64,000 bases of DNA from Macrostomum hystrix (Eukaryota; Animalia; Platyhelminthes), in the NCBI GenBank assembly GCA_950097015.1, contig CATNEN010000014.1:868001-932000 (forward strand), read 5' to 3'. Each line of letters starts with the position of its first letter. Position 1 is the stretch's first letter. Of the stretch, positions 1 through 59,769 are shown piece by piece. Made by a program: the position numbers and the translations under genes. The notes under the pieces were generated by a model. It ran no database searches and was not told the DNA's origin. It saw only the letters and a list, made by a program, of their open reading frames with translations.

Positions 1-189
1 CTCGAGACTTTGGATCTTGTTAGTTACGAAATAGATGAAAGAGTTGTAGAAAAAAGAATCGATATTGCACGAAATTCACTTGGCACCGCCGAAGCTATTG
101 CGCAGCGCTTCCAAATCATGTGTACAGCTGTTCAGTCCGTGGACTGAGTGCTTCCACTCCTACCGAAATTTCCACGCCAGCAGATGCTG

Positions 190-300
190 CTAGTCAATTT
201 ACAGCTGGGTGAAATGACGCAATGAGGGAATTGATTTAAGCGTCTGGCTCAGAGACACAGGTTATTTTCTTCGGGCTGCGATTCGAACTCCCGAACTACT
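190..300 (-). mobile_element. CORE-like SINE fragment (also at ~13971-14081)
   Basis: Minus strand reads B-box GTTCGAATC followed by ..ctgagccagacgcttaa..cattgcgtcatttcacccagctgtaaa, resembling the SINE at 47480-47645. Confidence 0.55.
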
Positions 301-354
301 CACACGGAGTTGCCTTTCAATGTGCAGCAGTCACTTTTTGTAGGCACTCGTTTT

Positions 355-752
355 TTAAAACACACACGACACGCAAAACTCCTAAAATAGCTCGTAGGAA
401 GAATTGGCAGAGCACAAAATGAACAATTGCAAGAGGGCTGCGGGCAATGGCACATCATTTGGCGACACCAGACCTGCAGCCAGCGAGGAGACAATTCGGC
501 CCATTTCGCTGACTCCTGAGCACACCTACTCACACAGGTGTGTACATCTGCAATCAATTTCTCATCATCAGGCAGTGTACACTGTCACTGTGCCTTGGAG
601 GTTGGCCCCCAAAGGCGCAAATTGCACTACAAGCCCCAAGCCTAATCTCCGCGGCTGCGGCCCAAATGAATGAGGCCTCACCATGGAATCGAGCTCAGGG
701 AGCTTGGTGCGAGAGGCAAGCGCTTTAGACCGCTCTGCCACTCACTCACCCC
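355..752 (-). mobile_element. tRNA-derived SINE in ADAM intron (duplicate at ~14136-14533)
   Basis: A-box TGGCAGAGCGG and B-box GAGCTCGATTCC on the minus strand. The body matches the plus-strand element at 32022-32370. TG-rich tail. Confidence 0.75.
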
Positions 753-894
753 GCAAGTGGGATTCTACAACGTAATTAATAGGTGAAAGTAATTCTAACC
801 TGAGTTGTTCGGCAGCCAAGTGAAAAGTGAAGAATCCCAAGATTGGGTCAGATTCAAGAAGTCAAATCCCAGTTGACTGAGTACCCTGACCTAC

Positions 895-3800
895 TCATCC
901 CCTAGAACGCCACGACAACCGGCCTCGCCGCCGCAGTCGCAGTCCTCGCCGTCTTCCAGAAGGCCGTTGCCGCAGACCGCTGTTGGCCAATCCCAGGCTA
1001 CTGGCAGGCGAAGCCCGCCCGGATAGTCAGCCTCTGGTCTCGGCCACAGCAGGCAGTGACGGACGCCGGAATCCAGGAAGTTCTTCAGGGCTTTCTTTGA
1101 GCATTCCGACCAGCCGATGTTGTGCCACTTGGTGCGATTCAGCGTTTTGGTGTCCATCATGCAGGCCTCATTGGAGTCGTGACACCAGCAGTGGTGGTCT
1201 TGGTATTTGTTATCGTAGTCGACGCCAAGGTTGTATGCCAGGTTCCGTGTCATTATCACCCCGGTGGTGTCGAAGTCGCTGGACGAATGAGACTGGCGTG
1301 GGCAGTCGGAGATATTCGTAATATATTCAATAATTTTATGTGAACCCAGTTTTGGGAGACTGAAAAACCAAGATTAGGGAGGCTGGGGAACCAGGATTTA
1401 GGAGCCTGCGGAATAGAGATTAGAGAGACTGGGAACAGAGATTAGGGAGACTCAGGAACAGAGATTAGGAAGACTGGGAACAGAGATTAGGGAGACTGGG
1501 AACAGAGATTAGGGAGACTGGGAACAGAGATTATGGAGGCTAGGAACAGAGATTAGGGAGACTGGGAACAGAGATTAGGGAGGCTGGGAACAGAGATTAG
1601 GGAGACTGGGAACAGAGAGAAGGGAAACTGCGGAACAGAGATTAGGGAGACTGCGGAACCCAGTATAGGGAGGCTGGTGGGATAGATTTTGGGGAGGCTG
1701 TGGGATAAAGAATTGGGAGACTGGAGATCCAGCGAGGAATTGAAAGAGAGGGTACTGGTCTCCTAATGCATTCTAATATAGGGATCAGTGTCCTCTGCTC
1801 GAAGCCAGTTTGCTAGTTACTTACGACGCTAAAACCAAAGCAATCTTGAATGTTGCACATGCTTTTATTATAGGCTGCGCCTGTCATGTCGTCGAAATTT
1901 CTGGCTCTGAAGTTTGAGTTGATGAAGGTTTTTCTATAATTTCTGGCTCTGAAGTTTGAGTTGATGAAGGTTTTTCTATAATTTCTGGCTCTGAAGTTTG
2001 AGTTGATGAAGCTTTTTCTATAATTTCTGGCTCTGAAGTTTGAGTTGATGAAGGTTTTTCTATAATTTTGGCTATGCACTCGTAATTTTTTTCCGACAGA
2101 AGTGTTTAGTAGATGGGAGTCTACTCGAGATGAATGAGAGTCTGGTAGGTTAAAGTATTGTCGATAAGACAGTCTGGTAGACTGGAGTGTTTTGGATCAG
2201 AGAGTCTGGTATAGATTAAAGCATTGTCATAAGATTGTAAGTCTTTTGTAGAAGGCAATGTGCTATCGGCTGTAGTCTTGCACATAGACAGTGAGCACTC
2301 AAGGCTATCCAATCAGCTCACGTAAGCAGGTGCACACAGTCGTAGTTGTAAGCATTGAAATGCGATATTGTCTTCGATAAATAACGCTTCCATAATCTCA
2401 GCAAGAAATCCTGATCTCGAGTTTTGAGAATGGCGTCAGTATATAAGTCAAAATCTGTACTGCTCATGTGAATTTCCAGCGCGCTGACTACTACGTAGAT
2501 GTCGAAGCGGCGAAATAACTGCAGAAATAGCGAAAATATGTCTCTTATACTGCTCTGAGTACAGTGCAAAAAACAAACTGCAGCTTTATATATCCATAAT
2601 ATTTTATGTATCACCTGTTAGACATGGGTATCACCTGTTAGACATGGGTATCACCTGTTAGACATGGGTATCGCCTGTTAGACATGGGTATCACCTGTTA
2701 GACATGGGTATCACCTGTTAGACATGGGTATCACCTGTTAGACATGGGTATCACCTGTTAGACATGGGTATCACCTGTTAGACATGGGTATCACCTGCTA
2801 GACATGGGTATCACCTGTTAGACATGGGTATCACCTGTTAGACATGGGTATCACCTGTTAGACATGGGTATCACCTGTTAGACATGGGTATCACCTGTTA
2901 GACATGGCCATCACCTGTTAGACATGGCTATCACCTGCTAGACATAGGTGTCACATGTTGGACATGGGTGTCACCTGTTAGACATGGGTATCACCTGTTA
3001 GACATGTGAATCACCTGTTAGGCACTATACTCACGTTGTTGACGATTCCAATAATGCTCTGTACCGCATGAATCACAGCCGATAAGCTCCCGGAGTGCAT
3101 ATTGTACTGCAATGAGAAGTGAGCAGCTGGACCATTACTCTAGTGGAGTTTTTTTGGACCTAAATAAGGCCACATTTTTTCACATCGGAAACGCTAATCA
3201 TTGCTAAGGCCCTCTAGTATCCATGGTTACCCCAATGGCAAACAAAATATCTCTTAATTTGCATAACATCTCGCACAGCAGTAGAATCTCGAGCAACGAG
3301 CAAGCAAAACAGTTTGTAATATTAAAAACTGTCTTGACCACGTTACTCTAGTCGATTGCCTCGCCTAATGTCTATGGTACACCCACATGACCTGGCCTAA
3401 TGTCTATGGTACACCCACATGACCTGGCCTAATGTCTATGGTACACCCACATGACCTGGCCTAATGTCTATGGTACACCCACATGACCTGGCCTAATGTC
3501 TATGGTACACCCACATGACCTGGCCTAATGTCTATGGTACACCCACATGACCAGGCCTAATGTCTATGGTGCACCTACATGACCTGGCCTAATGTCTATG
3601 CTTCTCCCTCAAGTCTTTCCAAAGCTAGTCGCTACTGTTATTATATGCTATATTAACATCAAATTATAAATGTTACACTCACAAACCAATAATCAGCGAT
3701 GATGTAGAGCTGCATAATGAATGGGCCGTCACGACTGAGCACCTTCCTGCTCAGGTCCAGCTTTATGGACCGCATATCGAACTTTTTGAACTTATTGAAC

Positions 3801-6800
3801 CGTGCTAAGCGCCGGTGCCTCTGTATTTGAGTTTTGAAGAAGCAAAGGCGAGTAGAATTAACGGAATTGATTCAGTCAGTCTGTCTGTGTTAGCTTGATC
3901 AGTCCATGGACTGGGTGCCGTCACACTCACTCAAATTTCTATCCGAGCTAATGCTGCTAATGCTGCTAATGCGGTTAGGAGTCCGAAACTCTGCGCCAAA
4001 ACCTCATGAGCATACGCTTTCAATGTTGGGTCACCAAGAAGCATAGAATTTGCAAAGCTAAGCCTCATCTATATAACTCTTGATTTTTAACTGGCTAACA
4101 TGATCAAGCTGAACAGCAACTTGACACTTGAATGGCACCAGTCATAAATACTTTTGCTATTCTGCCCCATTCTATCTGTTGGTCAGCTTTATCAACAATG
4201 GGAACAGCCATCCATCTGACATTATCCTTAATCCTTGAGATATAGAATAGTGACTCATAGAATAATTAGTCACTTTCAAAATTGGGCTCTTGAACTCTAT
4301 TAATCCAAATAAATGGCTTACCTGTAATAAAACGCTGCCACCAAGCATTTTGGTCAGTTGCTGTGGACTTACTGGAAGTTATGGTGAAACCCAAATGCTT
4401 ATTCATTGAGCATCTCAATATATTTCTAAAGTGATGTGAATGAAAGCAAAAATCATACTCACGTGCAGCAATCCGCTTATTCAGCACATCATAGGCCGAT
4501 TCCAATGCTTGACGCTGCTTCCAACCGACACTTGAAGGATACAAGTTGAGCTGGTACACCTGCCAGCTTGAGTCACGCAGCCGCATGCGATGCCCGGTGG
4601 CTTGAATATAGCCCAGGTGAGTGATGTTGATTGACAGCGTGCCACTGTCAATGAGGGTTGGATTCAGCTGCCCGGGTAAATGATCTGCATGGCTGTCTGT
4701 TCTGGGCTGTCTGTTCTGGGGTGTCTGTTCTGGGGTGTCTGATCTGGGCTGTCTGTTCTGGGCTGTCTGTTCTGGGGTGTCTGTTCTGGGGTGTCTGTTC
4801 TGGGCTGTCTGTTCTGGGCTGTCTGTTCTGGGGTGTCTGTTCTGGGGTGTCTGTTCTTGGCTGTCTGTTCTGGGGTGTCTGTTCTAGCGTGTCTGTTCTG
4901 GGCTGTCTGTTCTGGGGTGTCTGTTCTGGGCTGTCGGTTCTGGGCGTCTGTTCTGGGCTGTCTGTTCTGGGCTGTCTGTTCTAGGCTGTCTGTTCTGGGG
5001 TGTCTTTTCTGACGTGTCAGTTTTGGGGTGTCTGATTTGGGTTGTGTATTTCTGGGGTGTCTGATCTGGGTGTCTTCTGAGGTGTCTGTTCTCGGGAGTC
5101 AGTTCTGTTGGCTTTCTGTTCTGGGCTGCCTGTTCTGGGCTGTCTGTTCTGGGGTGTCTGTTCTATGGTGTCTGTTTTGTGGTGTCTGTTTTGAGGTGTG
5201 TGTATTTGGGGTGTCTTTTCTGGGCTGCCTGTTCTGGGCTGTCTGTTCTGGGGTGTCTGTTCTAGGGTGTCTGTTTTGTGGTGTCTGTTTTGAGGTGTGT
5301 GTATCTGGGGTGTCTTTTCTGGGCTGCCTGTTCTGGGCTGTCTGTTCTGGGGTGTCTGTTCTAGGGTGTCTGTTTTGTGGTGTCTGTTTTGAGGTGTGTG
5401 TATTTGGGGTGTCTTTTCTGGGCTGCCTGTTCTGGGCTGTCTGTTCTGGGGTGTCTGTTCTAGGGTGTCTGTTTTGTGGTGTCTGTTTTGAGGTGTGTGT
5501 ATCTGGGGTGTCTTTTCTGGGCTGCCTGTTCTGGGCTGTCTGTTCTGGGGTGTCTGTTCTAGGGTGTCTGTTTTGTGGTGTCTGTTTTGAGGTGTGTGTA
5601 TCTGGGGTGTCTTTTCTGGGCTGTCTGTTCTGGGCGTCTGTTCTGGGCTGTCCGTTCTAGGCTGTCTTCTGGGGCGTCTGCTCTGGGGTGCCTGCTCTAA
5701 GGTGTCTGCTCTGGGATGTCTATTCTGGGCTGTCTTCTGGGTGTCTGATCTGTTCTTGGGTGTGTGTATCTAGGGTGTGTGTACCTGGGGTGTCTGATCT
5801 GTAGTGTCTGCTCTGGGGTATTTGATCTAGGGCTTCTGCTCTGGGGTATTTGATCTAGGGTGACTGCTCTGGGGTATTTGATCTCGGGTGTCTGATCTGA
5901 GGTGTCTGTTAATTCTGGTGTGTCTGATCTGCATATCTGTATGTTCTTGAGTGTCTGTTCTGGGTGTCCGTTCTCACCGCAGCAGGTCAGAGCAGAGTGA
6001 CACAAGGCCTGGCTGAGTCACATTGCCCAACTGGGCAGTCCCAGACTCAATCGGCCACGCTGAGTAGTGGCACTGAGAGCGATGTCGCGATTTGCTGGCC
6101 CGGGATCGACTCCCCACGATTCGAACTGGGAACTCTTCAGGTCTGGAAAAGTATTTAACAAAGAGCTGCTACAAAGAGGCTTGCAGCAATAGGTCGTATT
6201 CGAGCTTCATCAAAAAGTATAAAAGTGCATTTGTGCTTACCTTCCCACCGCCAGGTAGAATGAGAACCGGCGCAGCGATGGCATAGCAACAATCTCTAAG
6301 ACCAAATTTCTGCCGATTTTCTGAAGCGGTAAAATCGAACTCACAATTTTGAAAACATTGAAACAATTTCAAGCCTCCGGTGTGTACCAGCTGGCACAGC
6401 CTTCTGTCGACAGGGGCAGCCTTCCACTGACAGGGCAACCTCCCACTGACAGGGCTAACTTCCACTGACAGGGCCAACTTCCACTGACAGGGCTACCTCC
6501 CACTGACAGGGCTACCCTCCACTGACAGGGCAACCTCCCACTGACAGGGCTACCTTCCACTGACAGGGCAACCTTTCACTGACAGGGCTACCTTCCACTG
6601 ACAGGGCAACCTTCCACTGACAGGGCTACCTTCCACTCACAGGGCAACCTCCCAATGAGGCTCAACCACTCAAATCAACAAAGTTTCATATGTAGGCTTC
6701 ACCTTCTAGCCTTTTGTTGGTGCAAGATTTTAACGCAATGAGGTTAGTAACAGTATGAGTGGTGGCATTTGATGGCACAGAACATATGCATCTGTTCCAA

Positions 6801-7268
6801 TTTGCTCATCGTTAACGATTGTGCACACTCGCTTTAATTTTAGTCCAACAATACTAAATCTCTAAAATATTTTCTTACTAAAAAGGTTTAGTTCAATCAT
6901 TTTAGATTTTGCTTACCCGGCTTGGCTGAACTTCCTGACCATCGTTGGCCTGAAATGTTCTCACCTTGGCCAGCAAGGTTAATGGCCTGGTTGAGTCCGC
7001 TGAAATCGCAGTTGAGAAGGCTAGAAATTCAGTGGCAATCATTGCTTTTGTAGCTTTCCAGCTTGTATTTTGTAAAATATGCTCGCTAATTACTTTTGAA
7101 TTGTGTTGTCATTTCAAATAATGCATTTAAAACTGAGCACACTCAAAATAGTTAAAAGGATTGTGAGTACTCACCGATTGCGCAGTTGGAACACAGCAGG
7201 ATGATAAATTTAGCTATTAATGTGATACAAAGAAGGCTATGGAGTTCACTGGCATGACTTATTGGCAT
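895..7268 (-). CDS. ADAM/reprolysin-like protein, copy 1 (catalytically degenerate; 3' exons lie left of position 1)
   Basis: Phase-compatible GT-AG exons: 7268-7175 (signal peptide MPISHASELHSLLCITLIAKFIILLCSNCAI), candidate prodomain exons 7020-6917 and 4559-4463, 3820-3683 (furin-like RHRR then IMQLYIIADYWF), 3106-3035, 2518-2322 (..YDCVHLLT), 1933(or up to 2059)-1825 (GAAYNKSMC), 1292-895 (zinc-box equivalent TRNLAYNLGVDYD, CMM Met-turn, CGNGLLEDGEDCDCG disintegrin start). Prodomain splicing not fully resolved. Confidence 0.85.
1400..1660. repeat. 22-bp minisatellite GGGAGACTGGGAACAGAGATTA (also 15160-15340)
   Basis: Tandem units visible in both ADAM copies. Confidence 0.9.
1896..2063 (-). 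repeat. 4 x 42-bp tandem repeat spanning an ADAM splice acceptor
   Basis: Unit aatttctggctctgaagtttgagttgatgaaggtttttctat, coding KTFINSNFRARNYR. Single copy in paralog 2. Confidence 0.95.
2611..3020. repeat. 20-bp minisatellite TCACCTGTTAGACATGGGTA (~20 units; ~13 units at 16198-16470)
   Basis: Tandem units seen directly. Confidence 0.95.
3364..3600. repeat. 32-bp minisatellite GCCTAATGTCTATGGTACACCCACATGACCTG (also 17026-17292)
   Basis: Tandem units seen directly. Confidence 0.95.
4690..5960. repeat. Complex GT-rich minisatellite (CTGTTCTGGGCTGT/GTGT variants; also 18366-19445)
   Basis: Tandem ~14-15-bp units with higher-order repeats. Source of the spurious VLGCLFW-type ORFs. Confidence 0.9.
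6408..6655. repeat. 19-bp minisatellite CCACTGACAGGGCTACCTT (copy 1 only)
   Basis: Tandem units, absent from the paralogous region near 19890. Confidence 0.9.
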
Positions 7269-9877
7269 GTTTACACAAAAAGTTGTAGCGATTCAACCAG
7301 TGGAATAGTCAATCGTCAATGTATATAAAATTCCTGCAATTTGAAACCCGATGTATATAGTTTCAGGATTGGAAAGGCTCATAGACTAAAACAGCGGGCA
7401 CGGAAAGTCGATTTGTGCCCGCTGCCGGGGGATTTCGTCTATGTCCAAAGCAACGGAAATATTGCTGCAAAGCCAAGAAATCATTAGAGAGCTGCTATCT
7501 ATTGATGCAAGGGATGGAGGGATGAGACTCAGCGGCAGAAAGCTGCGTAAAGACAATCATTCCGAACAAGTTTTGGACAAATCGAGATGAGACATTAAGA
7601 AACTTGAGCATGTCCTTAAAGTCCGCTCGCACCGGCGGGACACAACGCCTGTGAGGTATGAGTCAGTCCAGGCCCACGGGCTAAGGTCTGCGATGCCTCA
7701 CACCTGCGCAGTCGCTTTTTGAGCAGGCTTGGCAGGAAGCATCCCTGTGCCTTCGGGTACAGGAATCCCTCCACGCTGTCCCGTCAGCTGATCCATGGGT
7801 ACACGTCCCACGAGTGTTCAATTAAAACTCGTTCGCCACAAATGGAAAACAACTTTTCTAATAGATCTTGATGTAACTCTTATTCGCCACTAATTGTTTC
7901 AAGCAGCTTTGTTACTTATAACTTATTACTTATAACTTATTACTTACTTATTACTTATAACTTGGTCTGGTCGTTCAAAAAATCAACTTCGGCTTATAAC
8001 GGGTTTATGAGCGGTTTATAAGCCCCTACGATAAGAGATTTATACGAAAGCTTTCGCCGTTTTTTAATTCTGTTAGAACACAACTGTATACATATAAAAC
8101 ATATTTTTTATCAATTTCTGTTGCAAGATAAATTTAGCCTGAGTCATTGGGGAGAAACAGCTAGAAGGTTCAGTTCAGAGCATTATCGAGTAGAGTCGCG
8201 TTGTTGTTCTTGTGTTGAGGTTATCGAGATTTTGTTAAGTGAGTTACCAGTGCGAATTGTGAATTGAATATTGAATTGAATCAAGTACAGTACCTGGCAG
8301 GGGAATTAATCGTTCATTGCTTTCTCTTGTTAACTAATTAACACTTAAATATCAGCTGTTTAGCTTGGGCTTTTGAATCGTCTTGTCTTCGTTATTTTCG
8401 AGTTACGGCAATAGAGTCTCTCGCAAAGAGTAGGACACCCGACCTCATTTAGGAATCTCAACGAGTAGTAGGAGTTAGCAGAACCCTGCCGACACTGCGG
8501 AGATAGGAGGCTATCTCGCCAGTGTATTTTGGAGTGTGGAGGGGCGCCGAAAATCTCAGAACAGAGGAGGAATGGGATAGGAGGAAAGCATTGGGGTGGG
8601 GTGGGGTGTGTCGTCCAATCCGAGACTGGAGGGTGGGGAGGCATGGGGTGGGTGGGTGCCTGTGTCACAGTGCAGGGATGAACTGATGGGATGCCGGCCT
8701 ACCTGCTATAGCAGAACCCTGCCGACACTGCGGAGATAGGAGGGCGGCCTAATGCATGTAGATAGATAGTAGAGGCCGGCCTATCTCTTTGCATTGGGGA
8801 GGGGTTAACACAGCTGGGATAGGAGGAGAGGCCGGCCTATCTCTTTGCATTTGCTAAACTTAGCACAGGCCTACACGTTTTCCCCTCCCCTGAACACTAA
8901 AGGAGAAGAGGGTTAGTTCAACTCTGACGCACTTGCACTGTGGGGGGATAGGCGGCAATGCAAAAAGGATAGGAAGGATGGCTGAGCCAATCAGGTTAGA
9001 GGGTATGCGTTCTGCCCCACCTGCACTGGAGCGCCAGCCAGGTAAGAGATTTTATTTTTTAGCGGTGATATGGCTGTGACTCGCAAGTGGGAAGGCAGAT
9101 AACAGTGGAAGATGGTCAGGCGCGCTGCAGAGAGTGGGCCGCACGCACACGGGCTATGGTTTGCTGGGGTGTGGGGGCGAAGCCCCCACATTTTTTACCA
9201 ACTGAAAAACCCATTGTTCTTTAAAACAATGTTCAATTTGTGTAAAGTTAGTATTTTTCCACAGCACTGGTGAGCTATTTTGGAGCGGTCGCAACCTTGG
9301 CAAAAGCCAAATATATTGATAAAGCCAGAGGAGAGAATTGGATAGCGCTAATGAGTACTCAGTTCAACTCTGCCACACTTAAGAAATGGCGTAAAAAATG
9401 TAGTGAGTAGTTCTTCAGTACAAGAGTGTAAAAGGCTAAGACAATGAGCATTCAGCCTTTGTAGGGGGTGTGGGGGGCAATTAATAACTCTGCCTTTGCA
9501 GCCAATCTCTTTACACTGGGTACAGCTAGAGGAGGAAGAAGATAGGAGGAAAGCATTGGGGTTGGGTGGGGTGTGGCGCCCAATCCGATACTGGAGGGTT
9601 GGGAGGCATCGGGAGGGTGTGTGCCTGTGTCACAGTGCAGGGATGAACTGATGGGATGCCGGCCTATCTGCTATAGCAGAACCCTGCCGACACTGCGGAT
9701 ATAGGAGGTTGCCCGGCAGTGTATTTTGGAGTTTGGAGGGGCGCCGACAATCTCAGAACAGAGGAGTAATGGGATAGGAGGAAAGCATTGGGGTGGGGTG
9801 GGGTGTGTCGTCTAATCCTACTTACCTACATATCTAGTTTAAGCTCCATCACAGGACAAACACCCACCCCAACTCTA

Positions 9878-9916
9878 GCCAATCAGAATCGAGCACACAT
9901 TTTGGATGGTATATAA
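9878..9916 (+). promoter_or_regulatory. CCAAT box plus TATA box upstream of the PC4-like ORF
   Basis: AGCCAATCAG at ~9878-9887 and TATATAA at 9910-9916, ~80 bp before the ATG at 9997. Confidence 0.55.
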
Positions 9917-9996
9917 CCCCTCAAAAATCGTTAGGAAAGGAGCAAGTTTTCTCAGCTCGTAATTTTTCTGATCTTAGCTTTTGACATTAGCTAGCG

Positions 9997-10736
9997 ATGG
10001 ACATCTGCGACGGTTGTAAGATTCAGATTCAAGAGTACGAAGGCTTGAAGTACATAGCGATAAGAAAGTTCTACCGCCACGGCAGCACTGCAAGTCTGAA
10101 ACCTGGCGTCCCTGGCTTCAACCTGAATGTTTGCCAATGGGAAAAGCTGAAGCAACTGAAGCGGTCGCTCGTAGTGTCTGCTCTCAAAAGCGAGTGCAAG
10201 GTGGTGAAACTAGGCTTTGATAAGTTTATCGAAGTCAGGGATGGCATCATCTGGCTCAAGCGGCTGCCTGAGGACTGCTGCGAGGAGTTCATGAAGCGTA
10301 ACGCCGTACCGCTGACCCCACCGCTGTGGAAGAAGCTGTGGCACAACGCATCATGGATATAGACGGCCAGTTGTCAGCTCCCTTCAAGGACATGCGGACG
10401 AAGTACGAGCTGGAGTCAGATGAGGAAGAGCAGGACACGAAGCCCGTCCTGGAGGCCGAGAAACCTGAAGGCAATGGTGGAGACGAAGACGAGATCGGCT
10501 CGCCTAGAATGCTGCAGATCGACAACGAGGCTGCCACATCCACGCCGCTTCCCGTGGCTAGCGCTGGGGATGGACGGATCCCGTCTCGGGACTCGGACTT
10601 GCGGGAGGACCCGGTGTGGTACCAGTTCCGGGCGGCTGCGGCTGCGGCGGCCAGCGGTAGCAGGAAGCGCAAACAGCCGTTTCCACTTCGTCGGCAGGAG
10701 GCAATGAAGCTTACCAGGCTGCACTTCGATGAGTGA
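9997..10736 (+). CDS. Intronless PC4/Sub1-like ssDNA-binding protein (two PC4-like modules plus acidic tail with RKRK); either one gene with a -1 frameshift near 10338 or two overlapping ORFs (9997-10362 and 10353-10736)
   Basis: KIQIQEYEGLKYIAIRKFY..LKPGVPGFNLNVCQWEKLK matches the PC4 pattern (V.V.efrG..y.dIR..y..G.lkPg.kGI.L...QW..L). Second module ..AVPLTPPLWKKL continues in the shifted frame as VAQRIMDIDGQL. Confidence 0.7.
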
Positions 10737-10951
10737 CTGAACAGTGTGCTCTAATGCGTCTGACTGCTTTTGTGCTCAAATCAGCTGCTCAATTTGTAAT
10801 TTTGACAGTGTTAAAAGCCAGCTACTTATTGTTTTTTCCCATTTATTCAGTGTTCACAATTGCTTCTGCATTTGTATGGTGCTGGTTGTTTTTCGACGCA
10901 GGTCGATTTTCTGTTACAGTGAATTACAAAAAACCTAAGAAAATGAATTGC

Positions 10952-11536
10952 TCATGCTAGAGAAAGCAAGCCTTCCGCTCTTTCACACTCAGCCTGCAGA
11001 TTCGGCCCATCGTCTCTTCGCAGCATTTTGCCTCGAACTTGCGGCCTCCGAATGGCTGCAGCAGCAACAGTGGCGTCTGTCACAGAAGCTGTAGGACCGA
11101 TCACATCAGCCTCAATGCTCTGCAGTGCAGACTGGATAGAGTCATGCCGCAGGCGCTTTCCTCCATGTTGCGGTGCAGCATCAGCAGCAGTGCGCTTTTT
11201 CGCCGCCGCGCCTTTGCGAGTGAGGCTGCTGGGCATCAGGAAGTCATTGTCGCTGCCAGCTTCTTCCTCATCAGGTTCTGGCCGTCTATTGATTACGTCC
11301 TCGAATACCTGGGTGAACACACCAGAACGTGCAGTTGGCCGCTCATTCTCAGCCCGCTGTTTTTGCTGGTCGCGCCGCTGTTTCTCCTGTAGCTGCTTCG
11401 CAGCCCTGATGATTTTCCAGCGCTGGGCCTCCCTTTCCTTCTCCGTCGAAGGCACAATTTTATGCTCCTTGTGTTTGGCAGGCACCTGCTTGGCCTTCAC
11501 CTGCTGGCCTTCACCTGCCGCACTGGCTGCAGGCAA
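10952..11536 (-). CDS. Hypothetical basic/acidic low-complexity protein inside the Polinton-like element (true start unresolved)
   Basis: 194-codon open frame with coiled-coil and NLS-like tracts (KKRTAA, GGKRLR). TATAAATA near 11739-11746 and a minus-strand AATAAA near 10820. No in-frame ATG at the 5' end. Confidence 0.45.
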   Translation of the reverse strand: MPAASAAGEGQQVKAKQVPAKHKEHKIVPSTEKEREAQRWKIIRAAKQLQEKQRRDQQKQRAENERPTARSGVFTQVFEDVINRRPEPDEEEAGSDNDFLMPSSLTRKGAAAKKRTAADAAPQHGGKRLRHDSIQSALQSIEADVIGPTASVTDATVAAAAIRRPQVRGKMLRRDDGPNLQAECERAEGLLSLA

Positions 11537-12709
11537 GCCAGCGAGTTACTTAATTGGCAGGTGTTGTTGCTATGGTGTCGCGGGGAGACACCCCCAATTG
11601 TGCATGCTTCGCAAGTCAAGCACACCTCATAGAGGTCTTTGTGACAACTTTTAAATATTGGCGATTTCAACATTTTTCTAGACAGTGCTTGTGCTTACCA
11701 GGTGAATATTTGCATTCAAATTATGAATTTCAAGTCTTTATTTATATCCATAATCCAACCCCCATACCCCCTCACCCCTTACACTCCTCCCCATTCATAA
11801 TAAAATTAAATCAGCAAAAAAACCAACATTTAATTCCTGTTTCAAGATCGCCGCTAAGCCGCCCCTTGGTAACCAAACGGAATCGAACTCATAAAATCAA
11901 ATCGTCCCGGCGACCCTCAATCCCAAACAACCGTTACACTAAACTGTTTTTGAGTTCACAAACTGTGAATTCGAAGTCATAAATTTTTTCATTTGAAAAA
12001 TACCGCCCGGCGGCGTCGGCAGGGTTCTGCAAACAGATAGGCCGACACCCCATCTGTATATTCCCATGCCTCCTATCTCCACAGTGTCGGCTGTGTCCTC
12101 TGCTGTGGAATAGGCAGCGCCTATAGGCAGAGCAATGGAAAGTGTGGCAAACTAGCGAAAACAAAACGCATACAGATTTGCCAGGCATCCCATCTTTGTA
12201 TTTCCGTGCCTCCTATCTCCACAGTGTCGGCAGGGTTCTGCTATAGCAGGTAGGCCGGCATCCCATCAGTTCATCCCTGCACTGTGACACAGGCACCCAC
12301 CCACCCCATGCCTCCCCACCCTCCAGTCTCGGATTGGACGACACACCCCACCCCACCCCAATGCTTTCCTCCTATCCCATTCCTCCTCTGTTCTGAGATT
12401 TTCGGCGCCCCTCCACACTCCAAAATACACTGGCGAGATAGCCTCCTATCTCCGCAGTGTCGGCAGGGTTCTGCTAACTCCTACTACTTCAACGCAAAGA
12501 GAGACCTAAGTCAAAATATCAGAAGCGCATACAATCCTGAGCCGAGGCCGGACAACGTAATTTTGCGTCACATTGAAAGTTTCCATAACTGAAAAACGAG
12601 CGAACATTTCTATTCAACGTCATTTGTCCTACAAAACATTAGAATTGCATTTAAGTCATTGCATTGTTTGCAAAATTTAAAGGCTGCATTTTCAAACTAA
12701 GGCTGTGAC

Positions 12710-15700
12710 CTAGTAGACGGTGACTGCGGCGGCTGCCAAGCTGGCCAGGCTTACCAGGATGGCGGCGGAAACTCCGCCAGTTCTCTGGCCGTCACTAAAC
12801 GGTCCGGGCGGACCGCTGTCGATGCTGCCACCGTTGCCGGCCAACTGGCAGTCGGGCGGGGCGAATCCTGGCGGACAGTGGCAGTGGCCGCGCGAGTTCA
12901 CGGTGCCACCGTTTTGGCAGGTGACATTGCCAGCCACAGCGGCTCGGTTACGAATCTCCGAGGCGGATTGGCAAGTTCTGTTGAAGCACATTTGCTCGCC
13001 GGTACGGTTTCCGCAACGCGCACCGTCTGGCACTCGATCGGGCGGCCCGGGTACCCGCGGATGGTAGCCGCAAATGGCATTGCCGCAAGGTTCTGGACCT
13101 GTCCCGGTTATATCCGGAACGCAGTTCGCCAAATTCTCAATCGGTTGCACAAAGGTGCCGCACGTTACCATATCACATTCCTTGCTTTTTTTCGGGCACC
13201 AGGAACTCTGCAAGCAGTGGAGAAGTGTGATGTGTTGCTAAAAAGTGAACTAGAAAGCGAATCGGAATCGCTCAAGAAGAGACACAATAAATAGTGAGGT
13301 GAGCTTTACGGCTGACTTAAAAGGCAGTCAATATCGTTTTGCAGGAAAATAAGCAATTCAATCAAAGTGAATAAAAAGGGTTAGTAGTTTTAAGAGCTTC
13401 CGATAATGAGGGAATTCCTCTGACTCACGGCATCGCGTGCCGTCGGTCCCCAGAGTAACTGACACTGAGTCTGGGCGGAGCCGCACAGACCGTTGGCGCA
13501 GAAGTTGCTGCCGCACGGTGTCCCGTCTCTGGCAGCGAAATCGGCAGGGCAGGTTGAGTCGACGCCGTTACAGAATTCCGGCAGGTCGCATTGTCCTTTG
13601 GCGGCGCGGCAAACGGTGCCAGTCGGGCGCGGCTGACAGACCGTCAAGTCGCAGCAGCGCCCTGCGGCGCAGGCAGCGGATTCGGCCAGCTTGCAGGAGG
13701 TGGCGTTGCAGCAGTCGTTGCCTCTGTGAAACGATTGGTGAGCAGATAACTAACGACTTGTTTGCTACCTCTGACACAAAGCTCGAGACTTTGGATCTTG
13801 TTAGTTTCGAAATAGATGAAAGAGTTGTAGAAAAAAGAATCGATATTGCACGAAATTCACTTGGCACCGCCGAAGCTATTGCGCAGCGCTTCCAAATCAT
13901 GTGTACAGCTGTTCAGTCCGTGGACTGAGTGCTGCCACTCCTACCGAATTTTTCACGCCAGCAGATGCTGCTAGTCAATTTACAGCTGGGTGAAATGACG
14001 CAATGAGGGAATTGATTTAAGCGTCTGGCTCAGAGACACAGGTTATTTTCTTCGGGCTGCGATTCGAACTCCCGAACTACTCACACGGAGTTGCCTTTCA
14101 ATGTGCAGCAGTCACTTTTTGTAGGCACTCGTTTTTTAAAACACACACGACACGCAAAACTCCTAAAATAGCTCGTAGGAAGAATTGGCAGAGCACAAAA
14201 TGAACAATTGCAAGAGGGCTGCGGGCAATGGCACATCATTTGGCGACACCAGACCTGCAGCCAGCGAGGAGACAATTCGGCCCATTTCGCTGACTCCTGA
14301 GCACACCTACTCACACAGGTGTGTACATCTGCAATCAATTTCTCATCATCAGGCAGTGTACACTGTCACTGTGCCTTGGAGGTTGGCCCCCAAAGGCGCA
14401 AATTGCACTACAAGCCCCAAGCCTAATCTCCGCGGCTGCGGCCCAAATGAATGAGGCCTCACCATGGAATCGAGCTCAGGGAGCTTGGTGCGAGAGGCAA
14501 GCGCTTTAGACCGCTCTGCCACTCACTCACCCCGCAAGTGGGATTCTACAACGTAATTAATAGGTGAAAGTAATTCTAACCTGAGTTGTTCGGCAGCCAA
14601 GTGAAAAGTGAAGAATCCCAAGATTGGGTCAGATTCAAGAAGTCAAATCCCAGTTGACTGAGTACCCTGACCTACACATCCCCTTTAACGCCAGGACAAC
14701 CGACATCGCCACCGCAGTCGCAGTCCTCGCCGGGTTCCAGAAGGCCGTTGCCGCAGACCGCTGTTGGCCAATCCCGGGCTACTGGCAGGCGAAGCCCGCC
14801 CGGATAGTCAGCCTCCGGTCTCGGCCACAGCAGGCAGTGACGGACGCCGGAATCCAGGAAGCCCAGCAGGGCTTTCTTTGAGCAGTCCGACCAGCCGAAG
14901 TTGTTCCAATCGATGCCATTCATCTTTTCGTGGCTCATCATCATGCAGGCTGATTGGTCACACTTGCATTGGCCTGGGTATTTGTTATCGTATTCGACGC
15001 CAAGGTTGTATGCCAGGTTCTGTGTCATTATCACCCCGGTGGAGGCGGAGTAGCTCTTCTGACGAGACTGGCGTGGGCAGTCGGAGATATTCGGAATATT
15101 AAATGCTTTATGTGAACCAAGATTAGGGAGGCTGGGGAACCAGGATTTGGGAGCCTGCGGAACAGAGATTAGGGAGACTGGGAACAGAGATTAGGGAGAC
15201 TGGGAACAGAGATTAGGGAGGCTGGGAACAGAGATTAGGGAGACTGGGAACAGAGATTAGGGAGACTGGGAACAGAGATTAGGGAGACTTGGGAACAGAG
15301 ATTAGGGAGACTCGGGAACAGAGATTAGGGAGACTGCGGAACCCAGTATAGGGAGGCTGGTGGGATAGATTTTGGGGAGGCTGTGGGATAAAGAATTGGG
15401 AGACTGGAGATCCAGCGAGGAATTGAAAGCGAGGGTACTGGTCTCCTAATGCATTCTAATATAGGGATTAGTGTCCTCTGCTGGAAGCCAGTTTGCTAGT
15501 TACTTACGAGGCTAAAACCAACGCACTCTCCCCATTTGCACATGCTATTCTTAGTGGCTTCGCCTGTCCAGTCGATGGGATCGGGATTTCCGGCTCTGAA
15601 ATTTGAGTTGATAAAGGTTTTACTATAATTTTTGGCTATGCACTCGTAATTTTTTACCCGACAAAGTATTGTCGATAAGAGAGTCTGGTCGACTGGAGTC

Positions 15701-18700
15701 TTTTGGATAAGAGAGTCTGGTCGACTGGAGTCTTTTGGATAAGAGAGTCTGGTAGACTGGAGTCTTTTGGATAAGAGAGTCTGGTAGACTGGATTGTTTT
15801 GGATAAGACAGTCTGGTCGATTGGAGTCTTTTGGATAAGAGAGTCTGGTATAGATTAAACCATTGTCAATAAGATAGGAGTCTTTTGTAGAAGGCAATGT
15901 GCTATCGGCTGTAGTCTTGCACATAGACAGTGAGCACTCAAGGCTATCCAATCAGCTCACGTAAGCACGTGCACACAGTCGTGGTCCAGTCCCTTTCTAT
16001 CGTTCCTCGTTTCTCGGATGGTATCTCGATAATTCGTCCAATCTTCTCGCTGCCAATTCGCGTTTTCCATGCCAATTCCGATAATTTCCAGCGCGCTGAC
16101 TACTACATAAATGTCGAAGCGGCGAAATAACTGCAGAAATAGCGAAAAGATTCCTCTTGTACTGCTTTAAAAAAATTACTTTTATAAATGTAAATTGTAT
16201 CACCTGTTAGACATGGGTATCACCTGTTAGACATGGCTATCACCTGTTAGACATAAGTGTCACCTGTTAGACATGGCTATCACCTGTTAGACATGGGTAT
16301 CACCTGTAAGACATGGGTATCACCTGTTAGACATGGGTATCACCTGTTAGACATGGGTATCACCTGTTAGACATGGGTATCACCTGCTAGACATGGGTAT
16401 CACCTGTTGGACATGGGTATCACCTGTTAGACATGGGTATCACCTGTTAGACATGTGAATCACCTGTTAGACACTATACTCACGTTGTTGACGATTCCAA
16501 TAATGCTCTGTACCGCATGAATCACAGCCGATGAGCTCCCGGAGTGCATCTTGTACTGCAATGAGAAGTGAGCAGCTGGACCATTACTCTAGTAAAGTTT
16601 TTTTGGACCTAAATAAGGCCACATTTTTTCACATCGGAAACGCTAATCATTGCTAAGGCCCTCTAGTATCCATGGTTACCCTTAATGGCAACCAAAATAT
16701 CTCTAAAAGTTACACATTAATTTAATTTAATTTAATTTAATTTAAATTACACATAAATTAACAACTGTTAATTTAAATTGTTCTAATGATTATAATATGG
16801 ATATCGATAGTTATAAATAAAAAAACTAATTAACTTCGAATACGAATTTAAATGTATTGAATAATTCATCACCTTGTCACAGAAAAAAACCGGAGTGGGT
16901 CAAATGAGTCCACGTTGTGCTTAATTTGCATAGCATCTCGCACATCATTAGAATCTCGAGCTACGAGCAAGCAAATCAGTTTGCAATATTAAAAACTGTC
17001 TTGACCACTTTACTTCGATTGCCTCGCCTAATGTCTATGGTACACCCACATGACCTGGCCTAATGTCTATGGTACACCCACATGACCTGGCCTAATGTCT
17101 ATGGTACACCCACATGACCTGGCCTAATGTCTATGGTACACCCACATGACCTGGCCTAATGTCTATGGTACACCCACATGACCTGGCCTAATGTCTATGG
17201 TACACCCACATGACCTGGCCTAATGTCTATGGTACACCCACATGACCTGGCCTAATGTCTATGGTACACCCACATGACCTGGCCTAATGTCAATGCTTCT
17301 CCCTCAAGTCTTTCCAAAGCTAGTCGCTACTGTTATTATATGCTATATTAACATCAAATTATAAATGTTACACTCACAAACCGATAGTCTGCGATGATGT
17401 AGAGCTGCATAATGAATGGGCCGTCACGACTGAGCACCTTCCTGCTCTGGTCCAGCTTTATGGACCGCATATCGAACTTTTCGGAGCGCCGGTGCCTCTG
17501 TATTTGAGTTTTGAACAAGCAAAGGCGAGTAGAATTAACGGAATTGATTCAGTCAGTCTGTCTGTGTTAGCTTGATCAGTCCATGGACTGGGTGCCGTCA
17601 CACTCACTCAAATTTCTATCCGAGCTAATGCTGCTAATGCTGCTAATGCGGTTAGGAGTCCGAAACTCTGCGCCAAAACCTCATGAGCATACGCTTTCAA
17701 TGTTGGGTCACCAAGAAGCATAGGATTTGCAAAGCTAAGCCTCATCTATATAACTCTTGATTTTTAACTGGCTAACATGATCAAGCTGAACAGCAACTTG
17801 ACACTTGAATGGCACCAGTCATAAATACTTTTGCTATTCTGCCCCATTCTATCTGTTGGTCAGCTTTATCAACAATGGGAACAGCCATCCATCTGACATT
17901 ATCCTTAATCCTTGAGATATAGAATAGTGACTCATAGAATAATTAGTCACTTTCAAAATTGGGCTCTTGAACTCTATTAATCCAAATAATGGCTTACCTG
18001 TAATAAAACGCTGCCACCAAGCATTTTGGTCAGTTGCTGTGGACTTACTGGAAGTTATGGTGAACCCCATCTACTTATTCATTGAGCATCTCAATATATT
18101 TCTAAAGTGATGTAAATGAAAGCAAAAATCATACTCACGTGCAGCAATCCGCTTATTCAGCACATCATAGGCCGATTCCAATGCTTGACGCTGCTTCCAA
18201 CCGACACTTGAAGGATACAAGTTGAGCTGGTACACCTGCCAGCTTGAGTCACGCAGCCGCATGCGATGCCCGGTGGCTTGAATATAGCCCAGGTGAGTGA
18301 TGTTGATTGACAGCGTGCCACTGTCAATGAGGGTTTGATTCAGCTGCCCGGGTAAATGATCTGCATGGCTGTCTGTTCTGGGCTGTCTGTTCTGGGGTGT
18401 CTGTTCTGGGGTGTCTGTTCTGGGCTGTCTGATCTGGGTTGTCTGTTCTGGGGTGTCTGTTCTGGGCTGTCTTTTCTGGGGTGTCTGTTTTGGGGTGTCT
18501 GTTCTAGGGTGTCTGTTCTGTGGTGTCTGTTCTGGACTGACAGTTCTAGGCTGTCTGTTCTGGGGTGTCTGATTTGGGTTGTGTATTTCTGGGGTGTCTG
18601 ATCTCGGGAGTCAGCTCTGCATGGCTTTCTGTTCTGGGCTGTCTGTTCTGGGCTGTCTGTTCTGGGGTGTCTGTTCTAGGGTGTCTGTTCTGTAGTGTCT

Positions 18701-20363
18701 GTTCTGAGGTGTGTGTATCTGGGGTGTCTTTTCTGGGGTGTCTGTTCTAGGGTGTCTGATCTGGGTTGTCTGTTCTAGGGTGTCTGTTCTGGGCTGTCTT
18801 TTCTGGGGTGTCTGTTCTGGGCTGTCTGTTCTGGGGTGTCTGATCTGGGGTGTCTGTTCTAGGGTGTCTGTTCTGTAGTGTCTGTTCTGAGGTGTGTGTA
18901 TCTGGGGTGTCTTTTCTGGGGTGTCTGTTCTAGGGTGTCTGATCTGGGTTGTCTGTTCTAGGGTGTCTGTTCTGGGCTGTCTTTTTTGGGGTGTCTGTTC
19001 TGGGCTGTCTGTTCTGGGGTGTCTGATCTGGGCTGTCTGTTCTGGGCTGTCTGTTCTGGGCTGTCTGTTCTGGGGTGTCTGTTCTGGGCTGTCTGTTCTG
19101 AGCGTCTGTTCTGGGCTGTCTGTTCTGGGTGTCTGTTCTGGGGCGTCTGATCTGGGGTGTTTGTATCCTGGGTGTCTGATCTGGGGTGTCTGCTCTGGGG
19201 TGCCTGCTCTAAGGTGTCTGCTCTGGGATGTCTGAACTGCATGGCTGTCTATTCTGGGCTGTCTTCTGGGTGTCTGATCTGTGGTGTCTGCTCTCGGGTA
19301 TCTGATCTGGGGCTTCTGCTCTGGGGTATTTGATCTAGGGTGTCTGCTCTGGGGTATTTGATCTCGGGTGTCTGATCTGAGGTGTCTGTTAATTCTGGGG
19401 TGTCTGATCTGCATATCTGTATGTTCTTGAGTGTCTGTTCTGGGTGTCCGTTCTCACCGCAGCAGGTCAGAGCAGAGTGACACAAGGCCTGGCTGAGTCA
19501 CATTGCCCAACTGGGCAGTCCCAGACTCAATCGGCCACGCTGAGTAGTGGCACTGAGAGCGATGTCGCGATTTGCTGGCCCGGGATCGACTCCCCACGAT
19601 TCGAACTGGGAACTCTTCAGGTCTGGAAAAGTATTTAACAAAGAGCTGCTACAAAGAGGCTTGCAGCAATAGGTCGTATTCGAGCTTCATCAAAAAGTAT
19701 AAAAGTGCATTTGTGCTTACCTTCCCACCGCCAGGTAGAATGAGAACCGGCGCAGCGATGGCATAGCAACAATCTCTAAGACCAAATTTCTGCCGATTTT
19801 CTGAAGCGGTAAAATCGAACTCACAATTTTGAAAACATTGAAACAATTTCAAGGCTCCGGTGTGTACCAGCTGGCACAGCCTTCTGTCGAAATGGTTTCC
19901 GGGAATTTGAAGCATTTGCACCAAGCCAAACCCCTCCAGCTCACGAACAGATGATGAAACAGTCATGTCATTAATGTAAAATTTAGTTCAATCATTTTAG
20001 ATTTTGCTTACCCGGCTTGGCTGAACTTCCTGACCATCGTTGGCCTGAAATGTTCTCACCTTGGCCAGCAAGGTTAATGGCCTGGTTGAGTCCGCTGAAA
20101 TTGCAGTTGAGAAGGCTAGAAATTCAGTGGCAATCATTGCTTTTGTAGCTCTCCAGCTTGTATTTTGTAAAATATGCTCGCTAATTACTTTTGAATTGTG
20201 TTGTCATTTCAAATAATGCATTTAAAACTGAGCACACTCAAAATAGTTAAAAGGATTGTGAGTACTCACCAATTGCGCAGTTGGAACACAGCAGGATGAT
20301 AAATTTAGCTATAAATGTGATACAAAGAAGGCTATGGAGTTCACTGGCATGACTTATTGGCAT
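12710..20363 (-). CDS. ADAM/reprolysin-like protein, copy 2 (signal, prodomain, degenerate metalloprotease, disintegrin, Cys-rich, EGF, C-terminal hydrophobic tail)
   Basis: Exons 20363-20270 (signal), candidate 18235-18139, 17497-17378 (RHRR), 16555-16484, 16130-15961, 15622-15508, 15067-14676 (TQNLAYNLGVEYD; CGNGLLEPGEDCDCG), 13723-13429 (disintegrin CCNATSCKL..CRAAKGQCDLPEFCNG), 13207-12710 (Cys-rich, EGF CQNGGTVNSRGHCHCPPGFAPPDC, hydrophobic tail, TAG). Intron phases match from 17497 to the stop. Confidence 0.88.
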
Positions 20364-20555
20364 GTTTACACAAAAAGTTGTAGCGATTCAACCAGTGGAA
20401 TAGTCAATCGTCAATATATATATAATTCCTGCCATTTGAAACCCGATGTATATAGTTTCAGGATTGGAAAGGCTCATAGACTAAAACAGCGGGCACGGAA
20501 AGTCGATTTGTGCCCGCTGCCGGGGGATTTCGTCTATGTCCAAAGCTCCGGAAAG
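13782..20555. repeat. Segmental/tandem duplication, unit 2
   Basis: Colinear near-identical copy of 1-7450, differing in array copy numbers and small indels (e.g. ~220-bp AT-rich insert near 16700-16920; no 19-bp array). Confidence 0.95.
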
Positions 20556-23500: not shown

Positions 23501-24111
23501 AACTAATAATACTTACACTGTAATCAATGATACGTACAAAGTACTTTCCAAGTAGTACATTTCATCAAAGACAGAGTTAACTTACTAAGTACTTAAGTAA
23601 ATACTTAGCAAGTGCGGCATTTTCATCAGAAGAGGGTATCAACTTGCAAAGTAGTTTACTAAGTACTTGGCAAGTGGGCCACTTTCCTTCCAAATTGTTT
23701 TAAAAACAATATTAAAAGTTTTTCTCCGCTTAATAGTGACCAACTGCTTTTGCTTGAGTGTTTTTCTGTTCTTTTTTAAAGAAAGCAATGTTTTTCTGTT
23801 TTTAGTAAAAAGTGTTGTTTTTTGTGGTAATGAAGTACCAGAAAATGTTAAATTAGCTATTTTGCTAACCCCAATTAAAATAACAATGTTAACAAAGACA
23901 CGACAAGAGTAATAAAAATTGTAATTTGATTCTTTAGGATAAAGAGTTGCATAAAATTTATATTTTACTTTCCCGTTTTTTATTTTTGTCGTTATTTGTC
24001 GTTTTCCGCCATGTTTTGTACTATTTTAAATGTTTTTCTTGTAATGAAATTATTGGTCGGTGGTCGCCATTTAAAATGAATTGTAAGTCGTTTTGAAGGG
24101 CTGCAGCTTAA

Positions 24112-31792: not shown

Positions 31793-32370
31793 GGGGTGAG
31801 TGGCTAAGCGTTTAACGCGTTTGCCTCTCGCACCAAGGTCCCTGAGCGGGGGGTGAGTGGCAGAGCGGTTAACGCGTTTGCCTCTCGCACCAAGGTCCCT
31901 GAGCGGGGGGTGAGTGGCAGAGCGGTTAACGCGTTTGCCTCTCGCACCAAGGTCCCTGAGCGGGGGGTGAGTGGCAGAGCGGTTAACGCGTTTGCCTCTC
32001 GCACCAAGGTCCCTGAGCGGGGGGTGAGTGGCAGAGCGGTTAACGCGTTTGCCTCTCGCATCACGGTCCCTAAGTTCGATTCCACGGCGAGGCCACATTT
32101 ATTTGGGGCGCAGCCGCGGAGAGAAGGCTTTGGGGCTTGTCGTGCAATTGACGCCCTTGAGGGCCAACCTCCAAGACACAGTGAAGTGTACACTGCCTGA
32201 CGATGAGAAAGTCAGGGCAGATGTACACACCTGTGTGAGCGTATGCCTGCGTACAGTATTTGTGTGCGTGTGTGCTCAGGAGTCAGCGAAATGGGCAGAA
32301 TTGCCTCCTCGCTGGCTGCGGGTCTAGTGTCACCAAATGATGTGCCATTGCCCGCAGCCCTCCTGCAATT
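31793..32370 (+). mobile_element. tRNA-derived SINE preceded by 4 tandem 57-bp copies of its own 5' head; a further partial copy follows to ~32640
   Basis: Unit GGGGTGAGTGGCAGAGCGGTTAACGCGTTTGCCTCTCGCACCAAGGTCCCTGAGC.. with an A-box. Only the fifth head continues into B-box GTTCGATTCC and the SINE body shared with 355-752. Confidence 0.8.
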
Positions 32371-36598: not shown

Positions 36599-50129
<13,531 letters not shown>

Positions 50130-54070: not shown

Positions 54071-54424
54071 CTAACAGAAGTTGCAGCTCTCTTCTTACCA
54101 TTAGTACAGATTTTTGCCGTACTTTGCCGCTCTCACACGAATTTCACTGCCCAGCTGCATCTGGGCTCTGTATCTTTTCTAAAAATCGAATTTTCGCTCG
54201 CAAAAACTTTTACTTTTGTTACAGCTCTGATAGTAAAAAAAACTGTCAATCTCTGTCTGGCCGGAAAGCGTTGCGTAAATTATTAAGCAGCCAATTTTAG
54301 ATTTGTTTTATTTAAATTATTACGAAATTTGGAAAATTTGTTTTATCATTCTGCTCTGTCGTCTCATCGGTCAGGGCGGATTTCGTGGCGTTCAACAGTA
54401 GAAATTTTATTGCTTGCAAACACT

Positions 54425-59750: not shown

Positions 59751-59769
59751 GGAGGCATCAGCAGCTTGT

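Follow-up and report, generated by a model that had tools for sequence, protein, structure and literature searches.

Two tandem ADAM-like genes of Macrostomum hystrix with near-identical introns and divergent exons in the protease-like domain

Several ADAM proteins, namely ADAM22, ADAM23, ADAM11, ADAM2, ADAM18 and ADAM32, are pseudoproteases. In venom genes (snake phospholipase A2, three-finger toxins, snake venom metalloproteinases and conotoxins), exons exceed introns in divergence, non-synonymous divergence (dN) exceeds synonymous divergence (dS), the cysteines and the scaffold are kept, and the changes concentrate on exposed residues. In the major histocompatibility complex (MHC), introns coalesce recently and the ligand-binding exons are older, with dN > dS; recombination or conversion together with selection is the accepted cause. 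Here we describe a window of 64,000 nucleotides from the flatworm Macrostomum hystrix (contig CATNEN010000014.1, positions 868,001 to 932,000), in which two tandem ADAM-like genes on the minus strand are nearly identical in their introns and prodomain exons but strongly divergent in the exons of the protease-like domain.

Self-BLAST and MAFFT alignment of the window revealed one large direct duplication (copies A and B, Table 1), with an offset of 13,781 bases at the 3' end. The similarity of the two copies ends at 7459 in copy A and at 20554 in copy B. The disintegrin exon and all later exons of copy A fall beyond the left edge of the window, and the 3' exons of copy B are placed between the two copies. 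The 5.2-kb spacer that follows copy A (7460–12700) is without counterpart after copy B (20555 onward). Exon boundaries were set by AG/GT sites in both copies, and tblastn with the Macrostomum lignano ADAM protein P0001 (PAA73542) gave colinear exons, those upstream of E4 following its protease domain; the exons were searched singly rather than as a joined spliced protein. In the order of transcription they are pro1, pro2, the RHRR exon, S, E2, E3 and E4, followed in copy B by the disintegrin exon and the last exon.

The differences between the copies are distributed in the reverse of the usual way, as the original prediction had stated. In the five protease-domain exons taken together, 135 of 824 aligned positions are mismatched (16.4%), with 81 gap columns in addition, compared with 103 of 3152 (3.3%) in unique non-coding DNA (Fisher test, p = 1.6 × 10−36), the latter figure being inflated by misaligned minisatellite fringes. 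The clean intron between E4 and the disintegrin exon contains a perfectly identical run of ~650 bases, and the near-identity that had been noticed for 1–890 against 13782–14670 extends over all of its 894 bases. The prodomain exons differ by 1 mismatch in 395 bases, and over the 3.6 kb lying upstream of that RHRR exon, identity is mostly 98–100% outside the minisatellites. The claim of near-identical introns thus stands for the sequence outside the minisatellites but not within them, the E2–E3 intron being ~89% identical across its repeat region. The divergent tracts are contained within exons, the switch between variable and identical sequence is located at splice sites, and the boundaries of E2 are abrupt. 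In a control tandem ADAM pair from M. lignano (locus L001), only exon-sized pieces align, with 72–86% identity.

The divergent exons remain coding throughout. All seven exon gaps are multiples of three, compared with one of five gaps in unique non-coding DNA (codon-blind nucleotide alignment), so the predicted preservation of frame is borne out; the 12 cysteine columns are all kept between the copies, and no stop codon occurs in any recognised exon of either copy. E2 begins with 16 codons of a conserved strand and ends with the conserved DCVHLL; between these lies a hypervariable core (loop, helix B, loop), and the exon alignment confirmed the expected lengths of 43 residues in copy A and 34 in copy B between identical flanks. 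The 18-base insertion carried by copy A relative to copy B directly after the RHRR site is likewise present, and the other peptide pairs quoted earlier, from E3 and E4, are exact in the exon translations.

Nei–Gojobori pairwise counts were made on exon-by-exon codon alignments of the two copies (Table 1). When E4, E3, S and the RHRR exon are pooled, 6.5 synonymous differences in 141.5 sites and 70.5 non-synonymous differences in 518.5 sites are obtained (pS = 0.046, pN = 0.136), which gives omega ~3 (Fisher p = 0.0016, binomial p = 0.0012). The dN/dS ratio is significantly above 1, in line with the diversifying selection that had been proposed. In E4 the changes cluster in alignment columns 1–10 (pN = 0.41) and 30–60 (pN = 0.31), and the helix between these two blocks is nearly invariant.

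The silent sites of the exons differ by 4.6% and the clean intron by 0.45% (6.5/141.5 against 4/894), a ~10-fold difference (p = 0.0008); exons and introns therefore differ in coalescence depth, as expected if homogenisation is limited to the introns. The original prediction invoked strong diversifying selection and/or conversion. The value of omega agrees with it, while selection acting alone after a very recent duplication does not fit the ~10-fold excess of silent change. The conserved edge of E2 (the first 16 codons) carries two synonymous changes and no non-synonymous ones. Its core (129 against 102 bases) is aligned at the nucleotide level with a score that was reached by 1131 of 2000 shuffles, that is, at the level of chance, and because its similarity is no better than that of shuffled sequence, the core has the appearance of a cassette that is very old or has been replaced. 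A weak motif, D-[FW]-x-x-Y-x-D-x-I-x-x-T-R-[DN], survives in the core protein (25 of 2000 shuffles were as good). The locus is a mosaic in which at least three depths of divergence are combined: ~0.5% in the introns and the prodomain, ~5% at the silent sites of most protease-domain exons, and saturation in the E2 core. A compensated frameshift was considered as the source of the E2 core difference and rejected, since other frame pairs score lower. No donor template for the variable cores was found elsewhere in the 64-kb window.

That these are tandem ADAM paralogs, as originally proposed, is supported by domain searches. Reprolysin (PF01421) was detected on E4 alone in both copies (copy A, E = 1.3 × 10−10, 42.1 bits; copy B, E = 5.9 × 10−10, 39.9 bits; cutoff 20.8), and phmmer matched E4 to the structures of VAP1, catrocollastatin, ADAM17 and ADAM22. 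In copy B, Disintegrin (PF00200) scores 37.2 bits on the disintegrin exon (cutoff 35.1), and ADAM_CR (28.3 bits, cutoff 29.4) and EGF_2 (20.1 bits, cutoff 22.1) fall just under their thresholds. About 115 residues of the cysteine-rich region of P0001 are without counterpart in copy B. A hydrophobic C-terminal stretch precedes the stop codon and is compatible with both a transmembrane helix and a glycosylphosphatidylinositol signal. The prodomain exons gave weak tblastn matches to P0001 (E from 0.007 to 0.47; pro2 of copy A to residues 141–197) and no domain match in Pfam; a furin-type RHRR site is present.

At the position of the zinc motif in E4, copy A reads TRNLAYNLGVDY and copy B TQNLAYNLGVEY instead of HExxHxxGxxH. 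The consensus HExxHxxGxxH(D) is replaced by T(R/Q)NLAYNLGV(D/E)Y, in which all three histidines and the catalytic glutamate are lost in both copies, so that neither copy would be able to act as a metalloprotease. The Met-turn Cys-Met-Met is retained in both. We predict from these motifs that both copies are catalytically dead, pseudoprotease members of the ADAM family.

The closest proteins are the M. lignano ADAMs P0001 (53% over E4) and P0002, with 49–57% identity in E4 and the disintegrin exon. Among 1.84 billion representatives, no protein closer than 53% to the ADAM exons was found, and with residues 215–600 of P0001 as the query, no Macrostomum paralog nearer than P0001 itself was recovered. 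A word search with E4, which covers proteins of 78–248 residues only, gave no match.

The positions of the variable blocks were estimated by transferring the tblastn exon alignment onto the secondary structure of a model of P0001 residues 215–500, folded with a 24-sequence alignment (predicted local distance difference test score 76, and >85 over most of the domain core). The model matches the adamalysin-type structures BaP1, ADAM8 and adamalysin II with target-normalised TM scores of 0.84–0.88, and ADAM22 was also recovered. Conserved segments comprise strands one to three, helix A, the active-site helix together with the strand leading into it, and the C-terminal helix. Variability falls on the mature N-terminus behind the furin site and, in E2, on the loop that follows the second strand, on helix B and on the next loop. 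In E3 they are a short edge strand with the loops around it. In E4, columns 1–10 form the loop just ahead of the pseudo-active helix, and columns 30–60 an irregular stretch that starts at the third zinc-ligand position, includes the Met-turn and extends as far as the C-terminal helix. The substrate cleft of adamalysin-type domains has two rims, formed by the edge strand and by the wall after the Met-turn, and it is plausible on this model that the variable blocks of E3 and E4 lie on the pseudo-active-site face. The original placement of the variation on that face is thereby upheld in part: the blocks map to loops, to helix B, to the edge strand and to the residues that run from the third ligand through the Met-turn, and the agreement is one of secondary structure in a homologue model.

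ADAM22 offers a precedent. Positions 135–234 of PDB chain 5y31_A align with E4 residues 11–124 (phmmer); the chain has 497 residues, which we take to span 233–729, with 233 assumed as the first residue. ADAM22, a dead ADAM, binds LGI1 via the Cys394–Cys401 loop bearing Trp398, via Tyr408/409 and via Glu359, and these contacts lie in loops just past the pseudo-active helix of its protease-like domain (PMC5906670). By this approximate numbering, the LGI1 contacts would roughly coincide with the two variable blocks of E4.

To explain the locus, we lean, with modest confidence, towards homogenisation of the introns and the prodomain by conversion combined with diversifying selection on the binding surface of a dead protease. 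The product would be a membrane-anchored, furin-processed ADAM-like protein with its dead protease domain serving as a binding module. Gene conversion or unequal exchange between the neighbouring genes would keep the introns, the 5' flank and the prodomain exons ~99.5% identical, and conversions erasing differences in the protease-like domain would be purged by selection. Alternatively, the whole unit may have been homogenised recently and the cores re-imported afterwards from more distant family members via the conserved exon edges. Distant paralogs would share homology only in these edges, and imported tracts would therefore begin and end inside exons; such confinement fits the abrupt boundaries of E2 and its saturated core. 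The variant with import and the variant with purging are not separable from two sequences. Either way, positive diversifying selection would accumulate amino-acid changes and in-frame indels in the variable blocks, including the segment between the Met-turn and the S1' wall, while the cysteines and the core strands and helices are kept. Conversion together with selection would account for dN > dS, for silent exon sites older than the introns, for silent marks in the exon edges and for the kept scaffold. From the sequence we infer that gene conversion does the homogenising and that ligand binding is the function under selection, and likewise which surface is involved; a role in gamete, immune or allorecognition is a guess.

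Several points weigh against this explanation. Only two sequences are compared, without donors or a tree for the conversion tracts, and the synonymous count is small (6.5). At least five homogenised tracts must each end at an exon, in the case of E4 within three bases of the splice site, which calls for a cassette mechanism or for selection acting strongly at many sites. Finally, the candidate for the first exon is weak, and the phases of pro2 and the RHRR exon are mismatched.

A very recent duplication (~0.5% neutral divergence), followed by exon-focused acceleration through extreme selection on point mutations and indels or through targeted mutation, and without any conversion, is an unlikely explanation, albeit the main rival. 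Outside the five exons and the minisatellites the 7.4-kb unit is ~99–100% identical, the simplest sign of a young duplicate, and both dN > dS and the position of the variable/identical switch at splice sites are as it would predict. A divergence of 0.45%, however, would produce ~0.6 synonymous differences in 141.5 sites, compared with the 6.5 that were counted (p = 0.0008), and point mutation is too slow to have made the E2 core random at the nucleotide level. Exon-targeted mutation also lacks a known mechanism that would spare the introns of the same transcript, and the transition:transversion ratio of 27:50 shows no deaminase-like bias; a deaminase-type mutation signature was rejected on this ratio.

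It may also be, although we consider this distinctly unlikely, that the exon cores are exchangeable cassettes of a larger family of dead ADAMs, with the homogenised introns as recombination substrates, which would yield a combinatorial receptor repertoire. Short conversions anchored in the conserved exon edges would then shuffle cores between members or alleles, and the genes could encode germline receptors for self/non-self, sperm–egg or pathogen recognition in a flatworm. A second generator of variants could be a minisatellite of copy A that multiplies the E3 acceptor in frame. This 42-base tandem repeat (1896–2073, minus strand, 4.3 copies) occurs in copy A only and overlaps the E3 acceptor; its unit repeats the acceptor site and the first exon bases and is open in the frame of the exon (open reading frame (ORF) 1813–2079). 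Copy B has a single 42-base unit and, deeper in the intron, a 32-base repeat (15674–15849). If an upstream acceptor were used in copy A, the variable E3 block would gain repeats of 14 residues at its start.

Misplacement in tandem of alleles or homeologous copies of one locus by the assembly, with the hypervariability being balanced polymorphism, appears improbable. Repeats abound in Macrostomum genomes, as do minisatellites in the window, ~99.5% intron identity is within the range of heterozygosity, and PMC10468722 describes M. lignano as a hidden polyploid. The unmatched 5.2-kb spacer and the copy B 3' exons between the copies are nevertheless arranged as in a true tandem, the differences in minisatellite copy number are consistent and colinear, and no Ns or abrupt joins were seen in the window. 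Decaying pseudogenes, or unexpressed ORF-like sequence with neutral differences, could be suspected from the missing Pfam prodomain, the unconvincing signal peptide and a cysteine-rich domain shorter than that of P0001, but are highly improbable, since under neutral decay the introns should have diverged as far as the exons, contrary to what is observed, the gaps are in frame, the exons free of stops and the cysteines all conserved, and dN/dS is significantly >1 rather than ~1.

The coordinates of both copies are collected in Table 1. The first coding exon is tentative: the candidate is weak as a signal peptide, and its assignment as an exon is uncertain. An additional short exon between pro2 and the RHRR exon is likely, around 4010–4068 in copy A and 17690–17745 in copy B, because the phases at that junction do not fit. 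The last exon of copy B contains a GTAAGC donor at ~12753, from which splicing to a further tail exon could occur instead.

Table 1. Coordinates of the two ADAM-like copies in the window and differences between them (mismatches per aligned positions; Nei–Gojobori counts)
Feature	Copy A	Copy B	Strand	Mismatches	Gap columns	Synonymous	Non-synonymous	Content
Copy A	1–7459		−					5' flank down to the intron after E4; 3' end off the left edge of the window
Copy B gene		12710–20554	−					part homologous to copy A, 13782–20554
First coding exon (tentative)	6241–6284	19721–19764	−					ATG, 44 bases, GTAAGC donor, in phase with pro1
pro1	5978–6142	19458–19622	−					prodomain exon; copies identical
pro2	4463–4692	18139–18368	−	1/230				prodomain exon
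RHRR exon	3683–3820	17378–17497	−	6/120	18	2	4	furin-type site, then first strand of the protease-like domain
S	3035–3106	16484–16555	−	2/72	0	0	2	helix A
E2	2322–2518	15961–16130	−	58/161	45			second strand, loop, helix B, third strand
E3	1825–1906	15508–15595	−	19/82	6	1	19	short edge strand and flanking loops, next strand; one 6-base indel
E4	895–1292	14676–15067	−	50/389	12	3.5	45.5	pseudo-active-site helix, Met-turn region, C-terminal helix, start of disintegrin
Intron from E4 to disintegrin exon	1–894	13782–14675	−	4/894	0			
Disintegrin exon		13429–13723	−					57% identity to P0001 residues 498–595
Last recognised exon		12710–13207	−					short cysteine-rich part, EGF-like module, C-terminal hydrophobic segment, TAG stop
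Minisatellites	1371–1677, 2608–3021, 3359–3600, 4694–5910, 6409–6658	equivalents exist						periods 22, 20, 32, 14/99 and 19 bases

A minisatellite is present in each intron, with periods of 22, 42/32, 20, 32, 14/99 and 19 bases and with unequal numbers of units in A and B, and these arrays explain nearly all non-exonic differences between the two. The intron after E4 also contains an element resembling a short interspersed nuclear element (SINE), at ~520–754 in copy A and 14301–14535 in copy B; an ARAGORN scan called no tRNA. Relatives of this element, ~74–80% identical, occur in M. lignano loci (L001, 20563–20803; L002, 13347–13523), and a related, partly tandemised copy lies at 32017–32239 in the window (ORFs 31804–32200).

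In the spacer between the copies, an inverted repeat of 280 bases (8464–8743 and 12209–12488, 99.6% identical) brackets ~3.4 kb, which may be a transposon or an inserted gene. Within it lie an ORF (9997–10359) that encodes a PC4 domain (transcriptional coactivator p15; E = 7 × 10−7) and two acidic or basic ORFs (10326–10736, plus strand; 10952–11536, minus strand). Directly upstream of copy B, there are Gypsy/Ty3-type pol fragments with reverse transcriptase, RNase H and integrase (20847–23475, plus strand; 26015–29027, minus strand), the reverse-transcriptase ORF having a best database match of ~61%. A gene for a CDK-like kinase, whose motifs place it with the PCTAIRE/PFTAIRE kinases, was recognised at 46983–49643 (plus strand; Pkinase, E = 8 × 10−36 on one exon), and a minisatellite continues straight from an exon-like ORF in its region (~48950–49300). 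In the ORFs neighbouring the ADAM genes, Pfam matched only the PC4-like domain and the kinase. A glycine-rich ORF of 301 residues (58032–58937, plus strand), with no Pfam match, adjoins proline-rich tandem repeats (59306–59911). Kilobase-scale tandem arrays occupy 38445–40168, 43438–44176, 51230–54072 and 54329–55062, and some of the large arrays are strongly strand-skewed (GC skew −0.59 at 38–40 kb).

Inactive ADAMs (ADAM22, ADAM23 and ADAM11; the sperm proteins ADAM2, ADAM18 and ADAM32) have in common with the M. hystrix genes a zinc-less reprolysin-like domain followed by a disintegrin domain and, probably, by cysteine-rich and EGF-like parts and a membrane anchor, and several of the better vertebrate matches are ADAM32-like or ADAM18-like proteins. 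The identity to vertebrate ADAMs is only ~30–40% over one exon, however, and the cysteine-rich region of the M. hystrix genes is much shorter. For mammalian sperm ADAMs, selection is reported chiefly from the disintegrin and cysteine-rich domains rather than from the protease-like one.

The M. lignano ADAMs are the best database matches, have a colinear exon order and also occur as tandem genes. Unlike the M. hystrix copies, P0001 and the pair in locus L001 retain an intact HExxHxxGxxHD motif, and the L001 paralogs show the ordinary pattern, being 57% identical throughout with only exons alignable at the DNA level. This pair (NIVC01000824; Mlig019806 and Mlig026616, 3647–16767 and 19386–24953, 537 and 522 residues) has near-identical copies on three contigs, and some proteins in the database, of 727 to 1475 residues, resemble fusions of adjacent copies. 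The literature search found no paper on ADAM genes in Macrostomum. Reproductive genes evolve fast in the genus (PMC7336406 and PMC8662610), and the term "disintegrin" was absent from both papers in the search made.

Compared with venom genes, the ADAM copies appear to be membrane-anchored and catalytically dead, not obvious secreted toxins. The contrast of their non-synonymous sites with the intron is ~30-fold, and one core is saturated in surroundings that are otherwise 99.5% identical; in the classical venom cases the contrast between exon and intron is much smaller. A related paper is PMC3847720. The homogenisation known from MHC genes follows the same logic as the explanation by conversion and selection that we favour for the ADAM copies, but concerns alleles of one locus and another protein fold, and the copies described here are tandem paralogs unless the assembly is wrong.

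Thus, the pattern itself is known from venom and MHC genes, and the dead ADAM protease-like scaffold, in place of the disintegrin or cysteine-rich domains that serve adhesion, the free-living flatworm lineage and the size of the contrast appear to be new. If our explanation is correct, the locus is an unusually clean example of selection and gene conversion opposed to each other within one 8-kb gene, and of a dead protease fold used as a fast-diversifying binding module in a free-living flatworm lineage. The variable blocks are testable candidates for the ligand-binding surface and, given more copies or alleles, the locus would be suited to measuring the length of conversion tracts and the strength of selection.

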